A stretch of DNA of 63,480 nt, counting the filler, from Olpidium bornovanus S191 (lineage: Eukaryota; Fungi; Olpidiomycota): NCBI GenBank assembly GCA_017911155.1. It is 26 parts of 26 records of this genome, joined end to end, with 100 filler letters (N's around TTAATTAATTAA, not from the genome) between each part and the next. Parts side by side here need not be neighbours in the genome. Positions count along the whole stretch, not along the records: positions 6,588 to 8,718 come from JAEFCI010001777.1; 25 more parts are not named here. The stretch is one strand, 5' to 3'. The position numbers and the translations under genes were made by a program. This document shows positions 3,969 to 12,803 of this stretch, piece after piece. The notes beneath the pieces are model-generated. The model did no database searches. It was given only the letters and a program-made list of their open reading frames with translations, and was not told the origin of the DNA. Each line of letters opens with the position of its first letter. The first letter of the stretch is position 1.

Positions 3969-5866
3969 CTACTCTACAAATATAGCCTCGGCGGCAAACT
4001 TTTGATAGCCTTTGTCAAACTGGTGCAGCCGGATAAACCCGTCCTCCGCGCCGCTCGCGTACCTGGCACGTCAGATGCAAGTAAAATGGAAAAGGGCGGA
4101 TAAGGACGGTTGAGGGGGCCCAGGCCAGACCGCAGACAACAAGCCCCGCGCACGCCGGGACTTTGCACGCGTCATGTGTGTCGCTAGAACACACCGCCGG
4201 ACAAAAAAAAAATGTCCTCCTCCTCTTACCCTGTCCCGGCCGGATGGATCGCGATGGTGTTGATGGGACCAAAGTGGCCCTTCACCCGGCCGATCTCCTC
4301 TTCGAAAATCTTATTGTAGAACCGGCACTCGAACTTGCCGGCGCGCTGGCTCGTTCGCGCCGCCTCCATTGCTTCCTGACCGCCTCCCAGGACGACCTTG
4401 CGAAAAAATACCCACGAGTATGAGTGAAACGCTTACATCAAAACATTTCGCCTCTCCCGCGGTACAAATTTCAAATCACAACGAAAGCTGACTGCCGCCC
4501 CGAAAGTGGTGTCCGCCACCTAGAATTCGTCGAACAGGCCCCAGGAAACAGGCCCCAGCGAGCCCGTTGAGAACTCACCAGCTCCGCCGGCGAGGGGGTC
4601 AGCGCTGCGCTGTTCAGCGGGGTCTTGTCCGCAGGTTTGTACGTCTTCAGCAGATGCAAGGTTTTGGCCTCGTAGATATGCGCGCTCGAGTCCTTGCTGG
4701 CAGTGATGAAGTAGCTGTGGTCCTTGGCAAACTGTATGTCGGTTATGAGGGCGCTATGGTGCTTCACGGTGTTAAGGAGGTCGCCGCTCTGCAAAAATTA
4801 GGGGGAGGAAGTGAATGAAGGCGAAAATCCCTTTGGCAGCGCAGAATACGCGCACGTTTCAGAGCAGAAAAAGACTTCGTCGCGTCTCCGACTCCAACAC
4901 ACACCCGCCAATCCCACTGAGTGATCGTCCCGTCTTCGTGCCCTGCGATGACGAACTGGTCAAAGGGACCCCAGCCACCAACAAGCGCCTTCGATTCCTT
5001 GGGCTGCATCATGGACACCGGCTCGGGATTTTCTGGAAAACCCAGCGGAAACCTTAGGCGACCCAATTGATCGAGATTTTTTCTCCGCTCGGGCGACCCG
5101 GGATTTCGGAAGCGACGCCCCGAACCCAAGAGACTCACGCTCCCCTCCCAAGGGCTTGATTTCCAGAATTGTTATGGAGCCCGGGTATCCCATTCGCCGC
5201 TCGCAGGTCAGGAAGGCGTGCCGGCCGTCTGTTGAGAAAGCGACCCATTTCACGGCAGTGGGGAACTGCCAGGTGTGCACGAGCCGGCCGGTCTGAACCT
5301 CCCAGAGTCGCGCGGTGTTGTCAGCCGCGCCCGTAATAAGGACAGTCGAGTCGGCTGCAACCAGCAGGCAAAATCAAAGCAGAGGCGCGGAGCGGACGCG
5401 GCGGAAGGGGCCCAGTCGAATCAGTTTGACGTGCACGCTTTACAGGCCCCGGAACCCAACGTTCTCGCGTGGACCGGCAGACGAAGAAAGAACGTCTCAA
5501 GCGTCGGCGTCCGCCCGCAACAGTCTCGCCCTCTTCCCGACTGGACGGGAGGCCAAAGTTCCGCCGTCGACGCGCGTTTGCACCCCACCGCGTTCTTGCC
5601 AGGGACCACGCTCCTTCGCAAGCGACGGACGCTTTTCCACGTAAGCTCCGTTTCGCGGCAAACAGCAAGAACTTCCGTCACGTACGGCTGCAGTCCACGC
5701 TCCAGATTGCACCCTGGTGGCCCTCGTAGGTGCCGAGCCGCTCCCCGTTGTGCCAGTACCAAACGCAAAGCACGTTGTCTTTGCTGGCGCTGAAGAGCAG
5801 GTCGCCGTCACGGTTGAACTTGATTTGGGTGAGCGAACGCTCGTGCCCCGCGAGCAGTATCGGGTG
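3969..5866 (-). CDS. TIF34: Eukaryotic translation initiation factor 3 subunit I (WD40), multi-exon; first codon not located
   Basis: Exons translate [30 protein letters not shown]...[65 protein letters not shown]...[30 protein letters not shown] and [19 protein letters not shown] at 3969-3971; GT-AG introns. Confidence 0.96.
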
Positions 5867-6403
5867 CTAGAAGAAAATAAAAAAAGGCGAAGACGCGCGG
5901 GTTCAGCAGCAAGCCCCTGTCGCCTTTCAGGGTGTTACAAGCAGTCGCGGTGGCGATCGACGCTTGCGTCCGCCGGGTGGCTTGAACGACAGGGTGTCCC
6001 GCAACTCTCCCGCCGCAAGCGGAACCAGTTCCACCAGCGGGCGAACCTCCGACGCAAACGCCGCCGGTGCAATGTTCCCGGAACAACTTCCCCGCCGGCG
6101 ACCGCCGGCCTCACGCCCGGGGCATCGCAGGGACCGAAAGTCGCGACTTTGGCCCTTGCGAGGGAACCGTCGTATCAACGGCTGCAAAAACTCTGCCGGA
6201 TAAGCCTGGGATGGCGCTCAAATGCCGCTCTGCCGGGAGGCGGCGTGCGTTCCGTCCGGTCTGGCGGAGTCACTGCGGTTCCCCCTCTCTCTACACCACG
6301 CGGAGCCGGCACTCCCGCCTCGGGGGCGAGGAGGCAGTTGACTCGCTCGTTTCTCAGGCGGCGATTCTTCCACGCACACGCACGCACGCACACGCTGCCT
6401 CTG

Positions 6404-6478
<75 letters not shown>
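6404..6478 (+). repeat. (CT)n microsatellite near contig end
   Basis: Near-perfect CT dinucleotide run just before the spacer. Confidence 0.95.
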
Positions 6479-6481
<3 letters not shown>

Positions 6482-6587
6482 AGATCGNNNNNNNNNNNNN
6501 NNNNNNNNNNNNNNNNNNNNNNNNNNNNNNNTTAATTAATTAANNNNNNNNNNNNNNNNNNNNNNNNNNNNNNNNNNNNNNNNNNNN

Positions 6588-8090
6588 AAAGGGGCGAAGT
6601 CGACCGCACGGGTGGCGTGCAAGGCCATTGTCGCCGAACGGCAGCGGCAGCTCGACGACTGCAAGGCAGAGCTGCTGAAGTGCATCTCGGAGGCCCGTCT
6701 GCTCCATGCCACCATCTTAAAGAACGGCGGTTACGGAGATCCCAATGCGGACAGGTTTTCCACGTGGAAAGCAAATGCCCAGAGTGCGGAGGTCGGAGAC
6801 GCGGGCGCGAGGGCCGAGATCGCCCTCCTGCTTGCGGCCGCTGGCTGTATACCTAAGGCCACATGCAAACCCCCTGTGGAGTTGTTGTCGTATTCACTCT
6901 CTCCACTTCAGCCTCCTATGGCGTCTGGCAACAGGAGTTTGGAAGGCAAGGCCAGGTGCGAAGTAGTCATCGAGCGGAAGCGGCCCTGCGCAGAAAACTC
7001 GAGTATATTAAACGCCCAAACGGCGAAGAGTTCCGAGGGTGAGGGCGCATCCTTTACGGCCGGCAACACTGACCGGACAAAGCCGATCCTTCCGACTTCT
7101 AAATTCGGAGCCGACACTCCAAAGGCGAAGTCTTCCCCGAGCGCCGAGAAAAGCAAAAAAACGAAGTTGGACGACGACGGTTTCGCGGCGGGGAAGATCC
7201 CGAAAGGGCAGACGATCGAGGATGTCATATGGGACCTGCGCGAGCGGACCCATGTTCTCCGAAAACTCGAGAAAGAGCTTGTCGGGCGCGTCCGCTCCTT
7301 GCGGTACTTCACAATGGTTCGCGACCTTCAGCAGACCAGGGTGGATTTCGGCGGTTTAAAAGAGGTTGAACTTGCCTGCCCCGGCAAGTTCTGTAGAAAG
7401 AAGAGACAGGCTGGCCAGGAAGCTCGGAGGCGCATCCCTGCAGATGACGTAGCCATTCTCTCCTCCTGCGGCCACATGGGCTGCCGCGAGTGCGTGAATT
7501 TCCACGCGTGCAAACAGGAGTGCGTGGAACACGAGGAGAGCGGGTGCCGCGCCCCCGCCCGGGAGACGAACGTCGTGCTCGCCGTCTCGCTCGGCGTGGA
7601 CGCCGACACCGACAAGATCCGCCAGTTCGGCGCCAAGCTGTCTGCAGTCGTGGACCTCATCCAGTCGGTACCCCCCGACGAGCGCATCCTGATATTCGTC
7701 CAGTTCCCCGACCTGATGCAGAAGGTGGCGGAGGCGCTCGACGACGCGAACGTCCGATACCTGCAGATAAAGGGCACGGCGCACGCCAAGAGCACGGCGC
7801 TGCAGAAGTTCCAGCGGGAGGACCTGCCGCCCGGCGGCGAGCGCGTGCTCCTCCTGAACGTGATGGACGAAAGCGCCAGCGGCGCCAACCTCACCGTCGC
7901 GAACCACGCGATCTTCATCAGCCCCCTGCTGGCGCCGACGCAGGAGATTTACAACGCCTGCGAGACGCAGGCCGTAGGACGCGTTCGGCGCTACGGGCAG
8001 CGGAAAACGGTGCACATTTACCGGCTGTTGACGGAGAACACGATGGACACGCAGATCTACAACCAAAGGGTGCAAGTTAAAGAGAATTAA
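6588..8090 (+). CDS. DNMT5: C-terminal part of a SNF2-family ATPase with RING-like insert and helicase-C domain; most similar to fungal DNMT5 (often annotated Rad8-like)
   Basis: ORF open from the contig edge to TAA at 8090. Motifs: LRERTHVLRKLEKELVGRVRSLRYFTMVRDLQ, AILSSCGHMGCRECV...ECV...GC, ERILIFVQFPDL, RVLLLNVMDESASGANLTVANHAIFISPLL and ETQAVGRVRRYGQRKTVHIYRLLTENTMD. SNF2 helicase-C is secure; the DNMT5 identity is from recalled similarity, and the methyltransferase domain is not in the contig. Confidence 0.7.
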   Translation, partial: KGAKSTARVACKAIVAERQRQLDDCKAELLKCISEARLLHATILKNGGYGDPNADRFSTWKANAQSAEVGDAGARAEIALLLAAAGCIPKATCKPPVELLSYSLSPLQPPMASGNRSLEGKARCEVVIERKRPCAENSSILNAQTAKSSEGEGASFTAGNTDRTKPILPTSKFGADTPKAKSSPSAEKSKKTKLDDDGFAAGKIPKGQTIEDVIWDLRERTHVLRKLEKELVGRVRSLRYFTMVRDLQQTRVDFGGLKEVELACPGKFCRKKRQAGQEARRRIPADDVAILSSCGHMGCRECVNFHACKQECVEHEESGCRAPARETNVVLAVSLGVDADTDKIRQFGAKLSAVVDLIQSVPPDERILIFVQFPDLMQKVAEALDDANVRYLQIKGTAHAKSTALQKFQREDLPPGGERVLLLNVMDESASGANLTVANHAIFISPLLAPTQEIYNACETQAVGRVRRYGQRKTVHIYRLLTENTMDTQIYNQRVQVKEN

Positions 8091-8818
8091 AAAAAAAAAG
8101 AGAAAGCCTCTGTTCCCCCAAACCAAAATGTTTCTTGCACCGTTTTTTCTTAAGTCAATCCCACGTTTTTATAGATTTCCGCACGCTTTTCCAGCCACAT
8201 ATTTTTTTTTGTTTATTTCGGACCGATGAGGAAAATATGTTTCCAGGAAGACGCCCAGCTAGTAATCCCCGGCGGCCGTTCGAACTGCTGCCGGACGCGC
8301 TAAACCCTGAGGAAACCTTTATGGGATGATGCCACTCATTCGCGCTAAGTTGCTAAGGTCCGACTCGATTCGGGTCTTGCTCCTAATAACTCCTTCCGCA
8401 AATGTCCACCTCCCACCCACTTCCACATGGGCACACACACGCACGCACACACGCACACAAACACACCTGTGGGGAAACAGCCCATTGACCATCTCCTTGT
8501 TGCCGCGCTGAACATTCTGCAGCAGGGCAGGCCCTTTTCACTTGCCCGGGCTCTCCTTTCTTCCAAAAAAATACGGAGGAACCCCCCAAGGTTTCCACCG
8601 CCACAAACCGCAGGTGATAAATGCGCGTACCTCTGACGTTGCATTCGGCCGGGTGTCAGTCGGGCTCACATCATCATCTGCCCAAAAGTGGGAGTGACAC
8701 AGCGGACGATAATTTTGANNNNNNNNNNNNNNNNNNNNNNNNNNNNNNNNNNNNNNNNNNNNTTAATTAATTAANNNNNNNNNNNNNNNNNNNNNNNNNN
8801 NNNNNNNNNNNNNNNNNN

Positions 8819-10290
8819 CATGTACTCCTTGAACCACTGGAACAGGGATTGGTTGTTCCCAATGAAACACTCGACGCGCTCCACCAGGAGTCGGTGGTCA
8901 AAGATTCCTTGCGAAAAGAGGTTAAATATCTTGAGAAACTCGTTGTAGCTGGCCTTGTTACCAATGTGCTTTTTCACTTTTTCAAACCAGGAGATCTCCT
9001 CCTGCCACGTGCAAGAAGGTTGCACGGACCCCGTCGGCTGTATCGCGATGCCGTTGGCGGGCGCAGGCGCGTTCGGCACGGGAACTGCCTGCGGAGGCGC
9101 AGTGAGCGTGGCCGACAACGAGGCAACTGGAGATTCGCCCCGAGGTGTCAGGGAGTCAACGGGCAGCACGGATTCGGTCTTGTGCTTGCTTTTCTTCGAC
9201 TGTAGAGAAAAAAATGGGCTAGCCGCGTCATCATCTTCGTTCCCACAGTCAAGTCCGCCGTCTTTGGAACGTCGGTCTCACCTTGGTTGAACTCAGGCCC
9301 TTCTCCGCCGCTCTTACACTCCCTTTCCTGTTTTTGCCTGCGGATGCCACTCGCTCCGGCGTGGCTAGAGAAGGTTGCTTCTGATCTGCATCACCAACAT
9401 TTGAGAAAGGGCCGCCAGTTGCTGGGAACTTCCCAAACACCGGCATCCTTGAAGTGCCACTTGCGAGCCCGTTCGCTGGCGAAGAAGACGTAACAACAGA
9501 CACTCAATACAAGGCGTGCGGCAGCGGTCTTTATCGGACGAAGTGAAAGCACGCGGCACGCACCCAAATCTTCAAGCATGCCGCCGCCGGACCGAGCGTG
9601 ACTCGGGTGGTCCGGAAGAAATTGCTTGAACTCATTCAGCAGATCGGGAGCACTTCTGAACAGCACTGTGACCTGAGCATATACTTCCTGGATCGGCAGC
9701 ACTTCTCTCTGGTACATCTGCAAAATTTCCAAAAACTGCTTGTAGATGTCTGGTTCACTGGCAAATCGATTCTGTCCGCCGGAACAGCCGAGTCAGCTCT
9801 GGATACAGGCCGTACAAGCTTTTATTTTTGTCGCACCCTGGCGCGAGCGCCGCGGACAAGTCAGTGCCGTGCGGAGGAACCGCACCTTAATCTTATTGAC
9901 ATAGTCGATCGCGTGGTTGAACTCAACCGGCTGGCCATGGCCCCTCAGCTTCTCCGACTCCGCTGTCGGGTGAGGAGTCGGGCCTACATGGGAGGCTTGC
10001 GATGCGGGCGAGAAGCTACCAGACAGCGTCGGCCCACGGCCGGTTCCGGTGGCAAGGAAACCCTTTGGGGGCGGCCCGCCTAGAGCGGTGATCACCCGGT
10101 CGTTCGAGAGGACGGCCACCGGGGCACCGTCGATCCTTGCCGGACGCGATTCCTCCGGCTGCGACGGTACATGCGCCAAACCGCCTATCGACGCAGGCGC
10201 GTGCATTAGCCCCGGTATGGGGGGTGGCAGAATCGTCTGGTAGCCCGGGTGGGAAGAAGGATGAACCGCGGCGGCTTCGCCAGCAGCGGA
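8819..10290 (-). CDS. SIN3: Sin3 histone-deacetylase corepressor, internal fragment (PAH2 and PAH3)
   Basis: PAH2: [16 protein letters not shown]|[56 protein letters not shown]3: [31 protein letters not shown]...[23 protein letters not shown]. Confidence 0.96.
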
Positions 10291-10390
10291 NNNNNNNNNN
10301 NNNNNNNNNNNNNNNNNNNNNNNNNNNNNNNNNNTTAATTAATTAANNNNNNNNNNNNNNNNNNNNNNNNNNNNNNNNNNNNNNNNNNNN

Positions 10391-10960
10391 AGGGTCCCGT
10401 GCGCGGTGTTGGCGGCCCTGCCCCTGGAATGATGATGCCGCAACGGCCTGGAATGCCCGTTGCCGCCGCCGGCCCGGTCGCGTACGGTCGCCCTCCGATG
10501 CCGGGGCAGCCACCAATGCCCGGTCAGATGCCGCCGAGGCCGCTAATGGGTGCCCCACCTGGCTTCCGCCCCCTGATGGGCGTGCCACCCCCGCCAATGG
10601 GAGCATACCCGCCAGTGGCCGGCGGGCCGCCCGGTCGCGGCATGCCCATCGCCGCCCACTTGCAGCAGCGACCGCCCATGCCTGGCGCCGTAAGCTTGGT
10701 TCCTTTGCTTTGTCTTTGCGTTTGGCGATTTTGTTCCGGGACGGAACGGCAGTCGCGAACTTGTCCAAAAGTCATTTATAAGCCTGATGCAACGCGTCGC
10801 CTCCCCGTTTCTCTTCCTTGCCTTTTTGCCGAACGTTCGATGCGAAAAGATTCCGCCGCCTGGATTCCAAGGACCTCCTCCCGGCATGGTGGGACGCGGC
10901 ATGCCTCCTCCGCTCCCCGGCTTCCCTGGCCGCGGCGGCCCGCCGCCGAGACCGCAATGA
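10391..10960 (+). CDS. SMB1: Small nuclear ribonucleoprotein SmB/B', Pro/Gly-rich C-terminal tail (last two exons)
   Basis: The contig opens with GPVRGVGGPAPGMMMPQ, the conserved SmB GPVRGVGGP motif. A GT-AG intron runs about 10690-10849; the last exon IPPPGFQGPPPGMVGRGMPPP...RPQ ends at TGA 10958-10960. Confidence 0.85.
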
Positions 10961-12803
10961 TGAGGAGTCGTTTCACGCCAAAGGATAGTGTGATTTGCGA
11001 GCGCGCCGTGGGTCCCGCCCGGGGCCTTCACCCTCCCCTTCCCCCCCCTTCCCCCTTTCCCTCACACAAAATCTCCGGGTCTCCCCCTACTCCCCCGGAC
11101 CCCCACCTGCACAAACCGCCCGCCAACACACTCCGCGACGGAACTGCGGGAGACAAGAGAGAGGGAAGGGTTCAACCAACACGCGCATCCACCCGCGCGG
11201 GGCGACTTGATGAACGAGACAAGAGAAGGACGGAACCCGCGTGGGGTCTGCCAGGGCCCGCGTGGACGTCCGCATGGTACAGCGCGGCTTGGTGCGCAAG
11301 GACCTGACAGCGGCGTAAAGAGCGCAACTTGAACCCGTCCACAGTACAGATAGTTTGCGCCTTCTTTCGCAGTTTGAGATACTCAGAAGAAGGTCATTCT
11401 TTACTGAGATGCTTTATCGCACGATTGAGCCGCGCGCCGGCTCCCCATTTCTCGCAATGTGGCATAACGGCGGTTTGGAGGAGAATCCAGAAATTTTCAA
11501 AGTATAACCGATATTGCGTGGGTTGCCTCTGCACCCGGTTTTGTTACGGCAAGCCTGCCGCCCAGCAGATTTGACGGACACAGAGTCGTGCGCCGGAGCG
11601 TCTTTTTGCCGAGCCGGATGGCATACGTGCTTTTGACTGCCGTTTGTTCGTAGATCGTGATTTCTTCAGATTTCCCATCCCATCCCATACGGGAGACTGG
11701 GTCATAGCAGCTGCGCGTACCCGCAACGCACGCATAGATTAATCCCTTTCGTCTTCCCCGTAAGGCCGTACAAAAGGGCGTGGAGTAAATAACCTTGTTA
11801 GAATTGGATGTCCCTTTGTTTCTGGTTGTCATGTAGGCCTGCTTTCTGCGCTCGCGAGCCGGGAGCGAGCTTTCACAGGTTCAATCACGTGGCCATCAAG
11901 CAATCCGTTCCTCCTCCGCTCCCTGCCTCTTGTTGCTGTACGCGCTTTGGCTCGCTCCAGCGCAGCAGCAGCAGCAGCAGCCGCCCTTGCCCAAATCACC
12001 GCCCTCGCGCCGTATGGTAAAGTGCACAAGACTCAAACTGAACTACTTCCCCAACGGTCGGGGTTGCGCGTGGACTTCCCGGCTAGTTCCTGTTCGATTT
12101 GAGAGTTTTGCGTTTTGCGCCCGCCGTAGGGCGTTGTATTGTACATAGGATTTACGCGTTATGAGGGAAAAACATTTTGGGGTTCCGTTCAACCGGAGGT
12201 AGAAAAGGAAGTAGAAACAACAATTTAGCAGTTCCCGCGCGTCGGTCAACGTGCTAACTGATGTTTGGCTGCCGTGGCGGAAGGAAGCTGTTGGTGCGCC
12301 AAGCCAGATAACCCCTCTTGCCCCCCCCCCCCTCCCCCCCAATTGATCCACAGAGCCAGCCCAAGTTTAGACAGTATGAGTATTACGCGGGTTTCTTTCG
12401 TCTGTTCCCTTCTTTTCTCTTCATCTTTGGTGTCCGCGGCTGGTGATGTATTGCAATGCCAGGGTTACCTAGTATTTTATAGTGGAGTCGGGGTGGGGGC
12501 CGTTCGAGCAAAACATAACTGAGTATTAGGTTTAGGATAAACACGGACAAGGAAAAAGCCCCTGAATTATTTTCTTATTGTTATTGGTCTATTTTTGTGG
12601 GGTGATCTCGTTTGGGCTGAAAGGCCTTTTCAGGGTGGTATCAGTTTTTGGCGTGGCCCCCCGGCTACCTTGAAAGGGGGACTACCTCTTCCGGGGTGCC
12701 CCCCTTACCGGTCAACGGGGGGGTGTTCCACAACCCCCTTGTTTTCCAAACTTTCCGCGCTGCCCCTCCCCCCCTGCCCCCTCCTTCAACCCCCCTCAAC
12801 CAG

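Follow-up and report, generated by a model that had tools for sequence, protein, structure and literature searches.

Can a fragment that lacks its upstream half be recognised as part of a DNA methyltransferase? The question is raised by an open reading frame in a window of 63,480 nucleotides (the whole stretch of DNA analysed, from the Olpidium bornovanus S191 assembly GCA_017911155.1). The frame lies in one piece of that window, positions 6588-8718, which comes from record JAEFCI010001777.1. The frame could encode the C-terminus of DNMT5, that is, of the CpG maintenance C5 methyltransferase fused to an SNF2 ATPase, or it could encode the C-terminus of a RING-bearing SNF2 protein of the Rad5/Rad16/SHPRH type. 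We conclude that it is very probably the 3' end of a DNMT5-type gene, comprising lobe 2 of the ATPase and a natural stop, followed by about 630 bases of flank.

DNMT5 is regarded as ancestral to eukaryotes, with representatives in fungi, chlorophytes, haptophytes, stramenopiles and euglenozoans (PMC9998398; PMC12344493; PMC10538959), and the form with SNF2 and RING domains, DNMT5a, spans fungi, green algae, haptophytes and stramenopiles, including Phaeodactylum (PMC9998398). For the Cryptococcus neoformans enzyme (CnDNMT5), two reports describe methylation that is ATP-dependent and specific for hemimethylated CpG (10.1101/2020.01.05.895227; 10.1101/2021.10.01.462825). Lobe 2 of the CnDNMT5 ATPase consists of RecA2 and two insertions, a helical domain (HD) and a second RING (RING2). 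Within the HD, R2036 contacts hemimethylated DNA; in motif VI, R2265 and R2268 bind the gamma-phosphate and Y2269 stacks on adenine (10.1101/2021.10.01.462825).

The reading frame and its end

The frame is uninterrupted for 500 codons, in frame 1 of the plus strand, and terminates in a TAA stop (8088-8090); on the 5' side, the edge of the piece truncates it. The first-pass annotation, which had read this DNA as a DNMT5 C-terminus from an early-diverging, flagellated fungus, quoted several motif strings, and all of them are present in this single frame. GC content at the three codon positions is 0.61, 0.45 and 0.77 (that is, third-position GC, or GC3, is 77%), the coding part as a whole has a GC content of 0.61, and the pattern is that of a real gene. 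The GC content of the whole piece is 58%.

Residues 4-496 of the encoded fragment (hereafter, the query) align end to end with residues 1863-2322 of the 2325-residue DNMT5 of the chytrid Borealophlyctis nickersoniae. Since this alignment ends three residues before the end of the Borealophlyctis protein, we take the stop to mark the homologous, natural C-terminus.

Membership in the DNMT5 family

Among PDB sequences searched with phmmer, the best match to the query is C. neoformans DNMT5 (7r76_A), with an E-value of 2.3e-72 over residues 203-499 and a weaker block over residues 4-74. The next family is Rad5, at 3.8e-07, and ordinary remodellers follow at about 1e-05. At such E-values, the similarity of the query to DNMT5 is far beyond chance.

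To assess the fold, residues 200-500 were modelled with AlphaFold2 (AF2) from an alignment of 42 sequences. The model has a mean predicted local distance difference test (pLDDT) score of 86.7, and comprises a helix of 44 residues, a small module of Cys and His residues, and alternating strands and helices in a RecA-like fold. When the model is compared with the PDB by Foldseek, the top four matches (7r78, 7r77, 7r76 and 7t02) are all C. neoformans DNMT5, with E-values from 6.6e-22 to 7.6e-18 and 39-42% identity over about 303 aligned columns; Rad5 comes fifth, at 1.3e-08.

The architecture of the relatives points the same way. A search of 1.84 billion representative sequences yielded 138 proteins at E<=1e-30, many of them 2000-2500 residues long, with the query aligning at the extreme C-terminus. 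Full-length relatives (2100-2500 residues) carry PF00145, PF00176 and PF00271, and PF00145 is found in nearly every entry of two lists of 120 named full-length relatives. A Pfam scan of four long relatives recovered DNA_methylase, SNF2-related and Helicase_C domains in all of them. Named relatives at E<1e-60 show the DNMT5 architecture, and several of the full-length chytrid proteins also have an N-terminal chromodomain.

In each of three trees the query falls within the DNMT5 set, very distant from the RING-SNF2 outgroup, a single sequence whose branch measures 5-10 substitutions per site. By similarity, and by trees with that one outgroup sequence, the query is nearer to characterised DNMT5 than to any other SNF2 subfamily. 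The fragment is DNMT5 in family and in fold, and the initial preference for DNMT5 over Rad5/Rad16/SHPRH is borne out by the PDB sequence search, the fold, the architecture of the relatives and the trees alike.

Domain anatomy and functional residues

Lobe 2 of the ATPase is the part encoded by the piece, and its helical domain, RING2 and RecA2 follow one another in the same C-terminal order as in C. neoformans DNMT5, whose structures (7r76, 7r77, 7r78 and 7t02) are deposited under the name 'DNA repair protein Rad8'. The coordinates of all features are collected in Table 1.

The long HD helix contains the strings WDLRE, KELVGRVRSLRYF and VRDLQ, and in the 42-sequence alignment its W, R, E and H are nearly invariant. 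The arginine of WDLRE, R218, aligns with R2007 of the 7r76 chain, which is R2036 in the numbering of the structural paper (the chain index in the PDB phmmer alignment equals the paper's numbering minus 29).

For the RING2-like finger, the candidate zinc ligands are C264, C269, C294, H296, C299, C302, C312 and C320. Among the 42 sequences, C312 and C320 are invariant and C264, C294 and H296 nearly so; C269, C299 and C302 are candidates proposed from spacing alone. Because the spacing is non-canonical, with a C-x4-C pair that also occurs in Borealophlyctis and a C-x7-C pair, the RING profiles of Pfam barely detect this domain (E 0.07-0.45, 11-14 bits against cut-offs of 25-28).

Over residues 350-470, Pfam Helicase_C matches the RecA2 fold at 23.4 bits, the cut-off being 23.5. 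ERILIFVQF and SGANLTVANHAIF resemble the usual SNF2 consensus, and we take them to be motif IV-like and motif V-like, respectively. Motif VI is GRVRRY, continuing as GRVRRYGQ, and its R465, R468 and Y469 align with R2265, R2268 and Y2269 of CnDNMT5. Motifs IV-VI, so assigned, are intact, and motif VI keeps both of its arginine fingers and the tyrosine that stacks on adenine. The HD and RING2 precede RecA2, with the equivalent of the DNA-contacting arginine kept and the zinc ligands as candidates; all four of the residues named for Cryptococcus are conserved in the query, as R218, R465, R468 and Y469.

The region upstream of the HD consists of a conserved stretch and a linker. Over the conserved stretch (residues 1-91), identity is 44% to Borealophlyctis (residues 1863-1950) and 33-36% to Rhizophlyctis, Thoreauomyces, Acrasis and Tribonema. 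The linker (residues 92-202) is probably disordered. It might be suspected of being an unspliced intron, and we reject that suggestion. The linker has no stop in frame 0 and two and three stops in the other frames, and it is open in about 1% of shuffles; its GC3, at 0.65, lies below the values for the conserved coding parts (0.75-0.88) and above that for the non-coding flank (about 0.5); and in Borealophlyctis a linker rich in Lys and of similar length occupies this position, within an equivalent 495-residue region that is a single exon. Because the stretch is open only in the frame of the gene, has an intermediate GC3, and has this single-exon counterpart, we conclude that it is coding.

The query and the Borealophlyctis protein agree, then, in linker position, in the single-exon region and in the C-terminal end, but their linker sequences are unrelated and the coding GC of the query is higher. 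The differences from Cryptococcus DNMT5 lie in the linker, of about 110 residues in the query versus about 30 in Cryptococcus, and in the first zinc pair, which in the query is C-x4-C.

Table 1. Features of the piece, in window positions; residue numbers refer to the 500-residue query.
Feature	Residues	Position	Strand	Basis or remark
DNMT5-family coding sequence, 3' end		6588-8090	+	Open frame, PDB phmmer match, end-to-end alignment with Borealophlyctis
Conserved stretch directly upstream of HD/RING2/RecA2	1-91	6588-6860	+	Aligns to 7r76_A 1890-1963
Linker, Ser/Lys/Ala/Pro-rich, poorly conserved, coding	92-202	6861-7193	+	16% identity to Borealophlyctis
HD long alpha-helix, ATPase lobe 2	210-253	7215-7346	+	AF2 model helix 11-54, pLDDT >90
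R218 of WDLRE	218	7239-7241
KELVGRVRSLRYF	229-241	7272-7310
VRDLQ	244-248	7317-7331
RING2-like zinc finger	259-334	7362-7589	+	Aligns to CnDNMT5 RING2 region
SSCGHMGC	292-299	7461-7484
Cys/His block CGHMGCRECVNFHACKQECVEHEESGC	294-320	7467-7547
RecA2 (helicase C) fold of SNF2 ATPase	343-499	7614-8084	+	Pfam Helicase_C, AF2 model
ERILIFVQF	365-373	7680-7706
LLLNVMDESASGANLTVANHAIF	421-443
SGANLTVANHAIF		within 7848-7916
ETQAVGRVRRYGQ	459-471
GRVRRY, motif VI		7977-7994
Non-coding 3' flank (3' untranslated region and/or intergenic), 628 bases		8091-8718	.	GC 0.51, codon-position GC periodicity absent
A11 run overlapping stop		8089-8099
T9 run, about 110 bases downstream of the A11 run		8202-8210
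Imperfect (CA)n microsatellite, 35 bases, CA/CG		8432-8466		Tandem Repeats Finder

The upstream half

Several observations weigh against the identification of a complete DNMT5. The piece does not reach the methyltransferase domain, RING1, SNF2 lobe 1 (RecA1, with Walker A/B and the Q motif) or any chromodomain, and the full architecture is accordingly not observed; the Helicase_C match falls 0.1 bit below the Pfam cut-off, and no Pfam RING model is significant; and nothing above about 60% identity overall was found in the searched collections, either by word-index protein searches or by the exhaustive search of representatives. The piece begins at residues that match the 7r76 chain from about 1890 onward, and it starts about 1800 codons downstream of the expected position of the methylase. 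We infer that the methylase and RecA1 halves lie upstream of the piece, and the encoded protein would be enzymatically active.

It is helpful, in this regard, to examine the relatives that are short. The Rhizophlyctis protein P0109 (1204 residues) and the Acrasis protein P0001 (577 residues) both prove to come from split gene models: immediately upstream of each, in the same orientation, lies a DNA_methylase gene. Since both are splits of this kind, no free-standing C-terminal module was found in the two cases checked.

In Rhizophlyctis rosea (GCA_027596075.1) the adjacent genes occupy 4692-7883 (methylase, 1063 residues) and 8001-11615 (SNF2 part, 1204 residues); only 118 bases separate them, and the annotation has most likely divided a single gene. 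Next after the SNF2 part comes a chitin synthase gene. Two distinct R. rosea DNMT5 sequences, from two accessions, are present in our alignment, and they may be paralogues or strain copies. In Acrasis kona (GCA_026419775.2), where the locus has a GC content of 0.40, the DNMT5 is annotated as several short genes, at 8001-9734 with upstream genes at 4110-4877 and 5950-6399.

Closest relatives

The best match to the query is the Borealophlyctis nickersoniae protein HK104_008647 (Rhizophlyctidales, Chytridiomycota), at 398 bits end to end. Identity is 47% overall, 60% in residues 203-500, and 71.5% in RecA2; over the core, the value of 60% compares with 46-55% for eight other named relatives that were compared directly. 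The Borealophlyctis protein has the architecture Chromo + DNA_methylase + SNF2 + Helicase_C. Its distance from the query is no smaller than that between members of different chytrid orders.

This match is easily missed. With composition-based statistics, BLASTP reported residues 4-91 only and hid a match of 300 residues at 60% identity, which was restored by setting -comp_based_stats 0. The suppression is apparently due to the Lys-rich, low-complexity linker in the subject.

Other relatives are more distant. The top raw HMMER match is Acrasis kona. The Cryptococcus floricola orthologue is about 47-48% identical to the query over residues 201-499. Algal and stramenopile DNMT5a proteins (Tribonema minus and MMETSP transcripts) belong to the same family and have the same C-terminal module, with a core identity of about 51% for Tribonema; the algal sequences form a tree group of their own (89/85), and by identity the query is nearer to the fungal sequences.

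A scan of JGI metagenomes returned 10 loci, the best of which are 68-69% identical to the query in the last 134 residues and 41-42% identical before that. Three environmental contigs (in Ga0247732 and Ga0065721; our L008, L009 and L010) encode the DNMT5 C-termini with 68-69% identity over those last 134 residues. A change of frame in these contigs suggests an intron before RecA2.

Alternative explanations

The alternative that differs most in kind is that the fragment is the C-terminus of a Rad5/Rad16/SHPRH-type RING-SNF2 protein, that is, of a DNA-damage tolerance protein or ubiquitin ligase, and not of a methyltransferase fusion. Those families, too, insert a RING between the SNF2 lobes, Rad5 is the second-best family both in sequence and in fold, and some true DNMT5 entries are themselves named 'Rad8' or 'RAD5'. 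Rad5 of K. lactis (6l8n/6l8o) likewise places a RING before the RecA2 lobe, but its similarity to the query is marginal, covering residues 291-491 with 22% identity in the fold alignment, and the DNMT5 match is better by 65 orders of magnitude. Moreover KELVGRVRSLRYF, VRDLQ and the RING2 spacing are specific to DNMT5 and align along the whole 300 residues, whereas the Rad5-type families have neither an equivalent of the HD helix strings nor a methylase fusion. Given this gap, the RING profiles below their cut-offs, the near-universal PF00145 among the named full-length relatives and the length of the outgroup branch, we reject membership in these families and give this explanation next to no credence. 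A subtler alternative accepts the derivation from DNMT5 and holds that the sequence is a remnant or a methylase-less paralogue (a 5'-truncated or decaying copy), so that no ATP-dependent methylation would be implied. The upstream half does lie outside the piece, four of the relatives (P0356, P0365, P0430 and P0434) are listed without PF00145, and DNMT5 has been lost repeatedly in fungi (10.1101/2025.01.10.632494). Decay, however, is at odds with 1503 bases free of stops and frameshifts, with a strong GC3 that rises in the conserved domains, and with the retention of every functionally named residue and candidate zinc ligand; and both of the short relatives inspected turned out to be annotation splits with the methylase immediately upstream. 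We therefore consider a remnant quite improbable, and retain the 3' end of a DNMT5 gene as our reading.

The remaining alternative concerns the source of that DNMT5 gene, which, instead of a zoosporic fungus, might be a dikaryan, perhaps present as a contaminant, or else a protist or alga outside the fungi. Trees were computed quickly for 129 rows, and with a mixture model for 42 and 32 rows. In trees from 490 columns the query belongs neither to the crown-Dikarya clade (95/90) nor to that of the Spizellomycetales (96/90), and Borealophlyctis is its nearest row. Against a specific tie to Borealophlyctis, the grouping of the two has support of 53/74 in one tree and is absent from the 32-row tree; and, with 285 C-terminal columns, Dikarya, Acrasis and the query form a weak clade (support 81), Acrasis also being the top raw HMMER match. 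The piece is also richer in GC (58%) than the Borealophlyctis locus (52%). Approximately unbiased (AU) tests give p-values of 0.49 for the query with Borealophlyctis, 0.46 with Rhizophlyctidales, and 0.55 with Spizellomycetales + Rhizophlyctidales, for which the best constrained tree is as good as the free tree; a grouping of the query with crown Dikarya (p 0.23) is not rejected either, nor is one with algae (p 0.30). All five hypotheses that were AU-tested survived. Among the relatives compared, Borealophlyctis nevertheless has the highest identity to the query in both conserved blocks, upstream stretch and core, and a C-x4-C first zinc pair and a long linker are common to the two. A source outside the zoosporic fungi is thus possible, although we hold it doubtful; from the sequence comparisons we lean towards a chytrid-grade fungus, with the remainder of our credence split between other fungi and protists. 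The initial placement in an early-diverging, flagellated fungus is compatible with these results, in that the nearest named relative is a chytrid, but it is not demonstrated, as the AU tests reject none of its competitors.

Two placements in these trees concern other sequences. The DNMT5 of the monoblepharid Hyaloraphidium curvatum groups with that of Cryptococcus floricola (98/98 and 100/99), against the species tree; both are long branches, and long-branch attraction, an old paralogue or a transfer could account for the grouping. The C-terminus of DNMT5 from the heterolobosean Acrasis kona, which is among the best matches of the query, adjoins the crown fungal clade (82/62; 69/47).

A mechanism by analogy

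If the encoded protein operates as its Cryptococcus counterpart does (10.1101/2021.10.01.462825; Dumesic et al., 10.1101/2020.01.05.895227), hemimethylated CpG would be bound by the target-recognition domain of the methylase, and an allosteric loop, once freed, would contact RING2. Lobe 2, the part encoded here, would then rotate by about 25 degrees, with the HD arginine touching the DNA, and ATP would draw RecA1 shut on RecA2 by way of the motif VI arginine fingers. This closure would unlock the catalytic loop and active site of the methylase, such that hemimethylated CG sites alone would be methylated. The use of ATP would thereby be coupled to a very high specificity of maintenance.

Implications for methylation

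ATP-dependent maintenance of 5-methylcytosine (5mC) in the lineage of the query, as the first-pass annotation proposed, is a reasonable inference, with the methylase domain lying outside the piece. The host would retain CG methylation, most likely on transposons. The same annotation described the DNA as CpG-rich rather than CpG-depleted, and this is correct for the piece: the ratio of observed to expected CpG is 1.16 for the coding sequence and 0.95 for the flank of 628 bases 3' of the stop. However, DNMT5 methylation targets transposons in Cryptococcus and Phaeodactylum (PMC12344493). Because it is restricted in this manner, a housekeeping gene need not be CpG-depleted, and the absence of depletion is uninformative.

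The significance first attached to the locus was overrated. Reviews stress N6-methyladenine (6mA) and near-undetectable 5mC in early-diverging fungi (PMC13297926), and yet full-length DNMT5 genes, mostly labelled 'hypothetical protein', are deposited for 14 Chytridiomycota species in four orders among our named matches, counting the uniflagellate-derived Hyaloraphidium. The genera are Rhizophlyctis (R. rosea), Borealophlyctis, Powellomyces, Thoreauomyces, Geranomyces (two species), Gaertneriomyces (two), Fimicolochytrium, Irineochytrium, Phlyctochytrium (two) and Hyaloraphidium. Furthermore, nanopore methylomes of the chytrid Spizellomyces punctatus have already been measured, with 5mC confined to transposons and 6mA on expressed genes (PMC12695648). 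The finding is genuine yet unremarkable, and it opens no new question, the mechanism of DNMT5 having already been solved structurally. It contributes one more DNMT5 sequence, a fairly divergent one whose core is at most about 60% identical to any sequence in the collections searched, and supports the view that an ancient maintenance methylase was retained in deep fungal lineages alongside 6mA.

The locus would mean more if the gene came from a zoosporic lineage that is unsequenced or has been scored as lacking DNMT5, such as the Blastocladiomycota Allomyces and Catenaria, which we consider unlikely. The supplementary table of a 2023 survey appears to have no DNMT5 entry for Allomyces, Catenaria or Gonapodya. 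Were such an origin true, ATP-dependent CG maintenance methylation would reach one more deep branch of the fungi, in which 6mA is otherwise treated as the dominant mark.

The practical value of the analysis lies in annotation, as nearly all of these genes carry the label 'hypothetical protein', 'Rad8' or 'RAD5' in the databases.

Other features of the piece

Two antisense open frames lie opposite the DNMT5 frame on the minus strand, at 7356-8126 (256 codons) and 7328-7918 (196 codons). We treat them as shadows, as expected opposite a gene with high GC3, and not as genes. Within the flank (8091-8718), open frames of 57-99 residues on either strand had no Pfam match, and no tRNA and no Rfam family above noise was detected there. 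The A11 run at the stop might be mistaken for the tail of a complementary DNA; since the sequence runs on for 620 bases past it, we conclude that the run is genomic.

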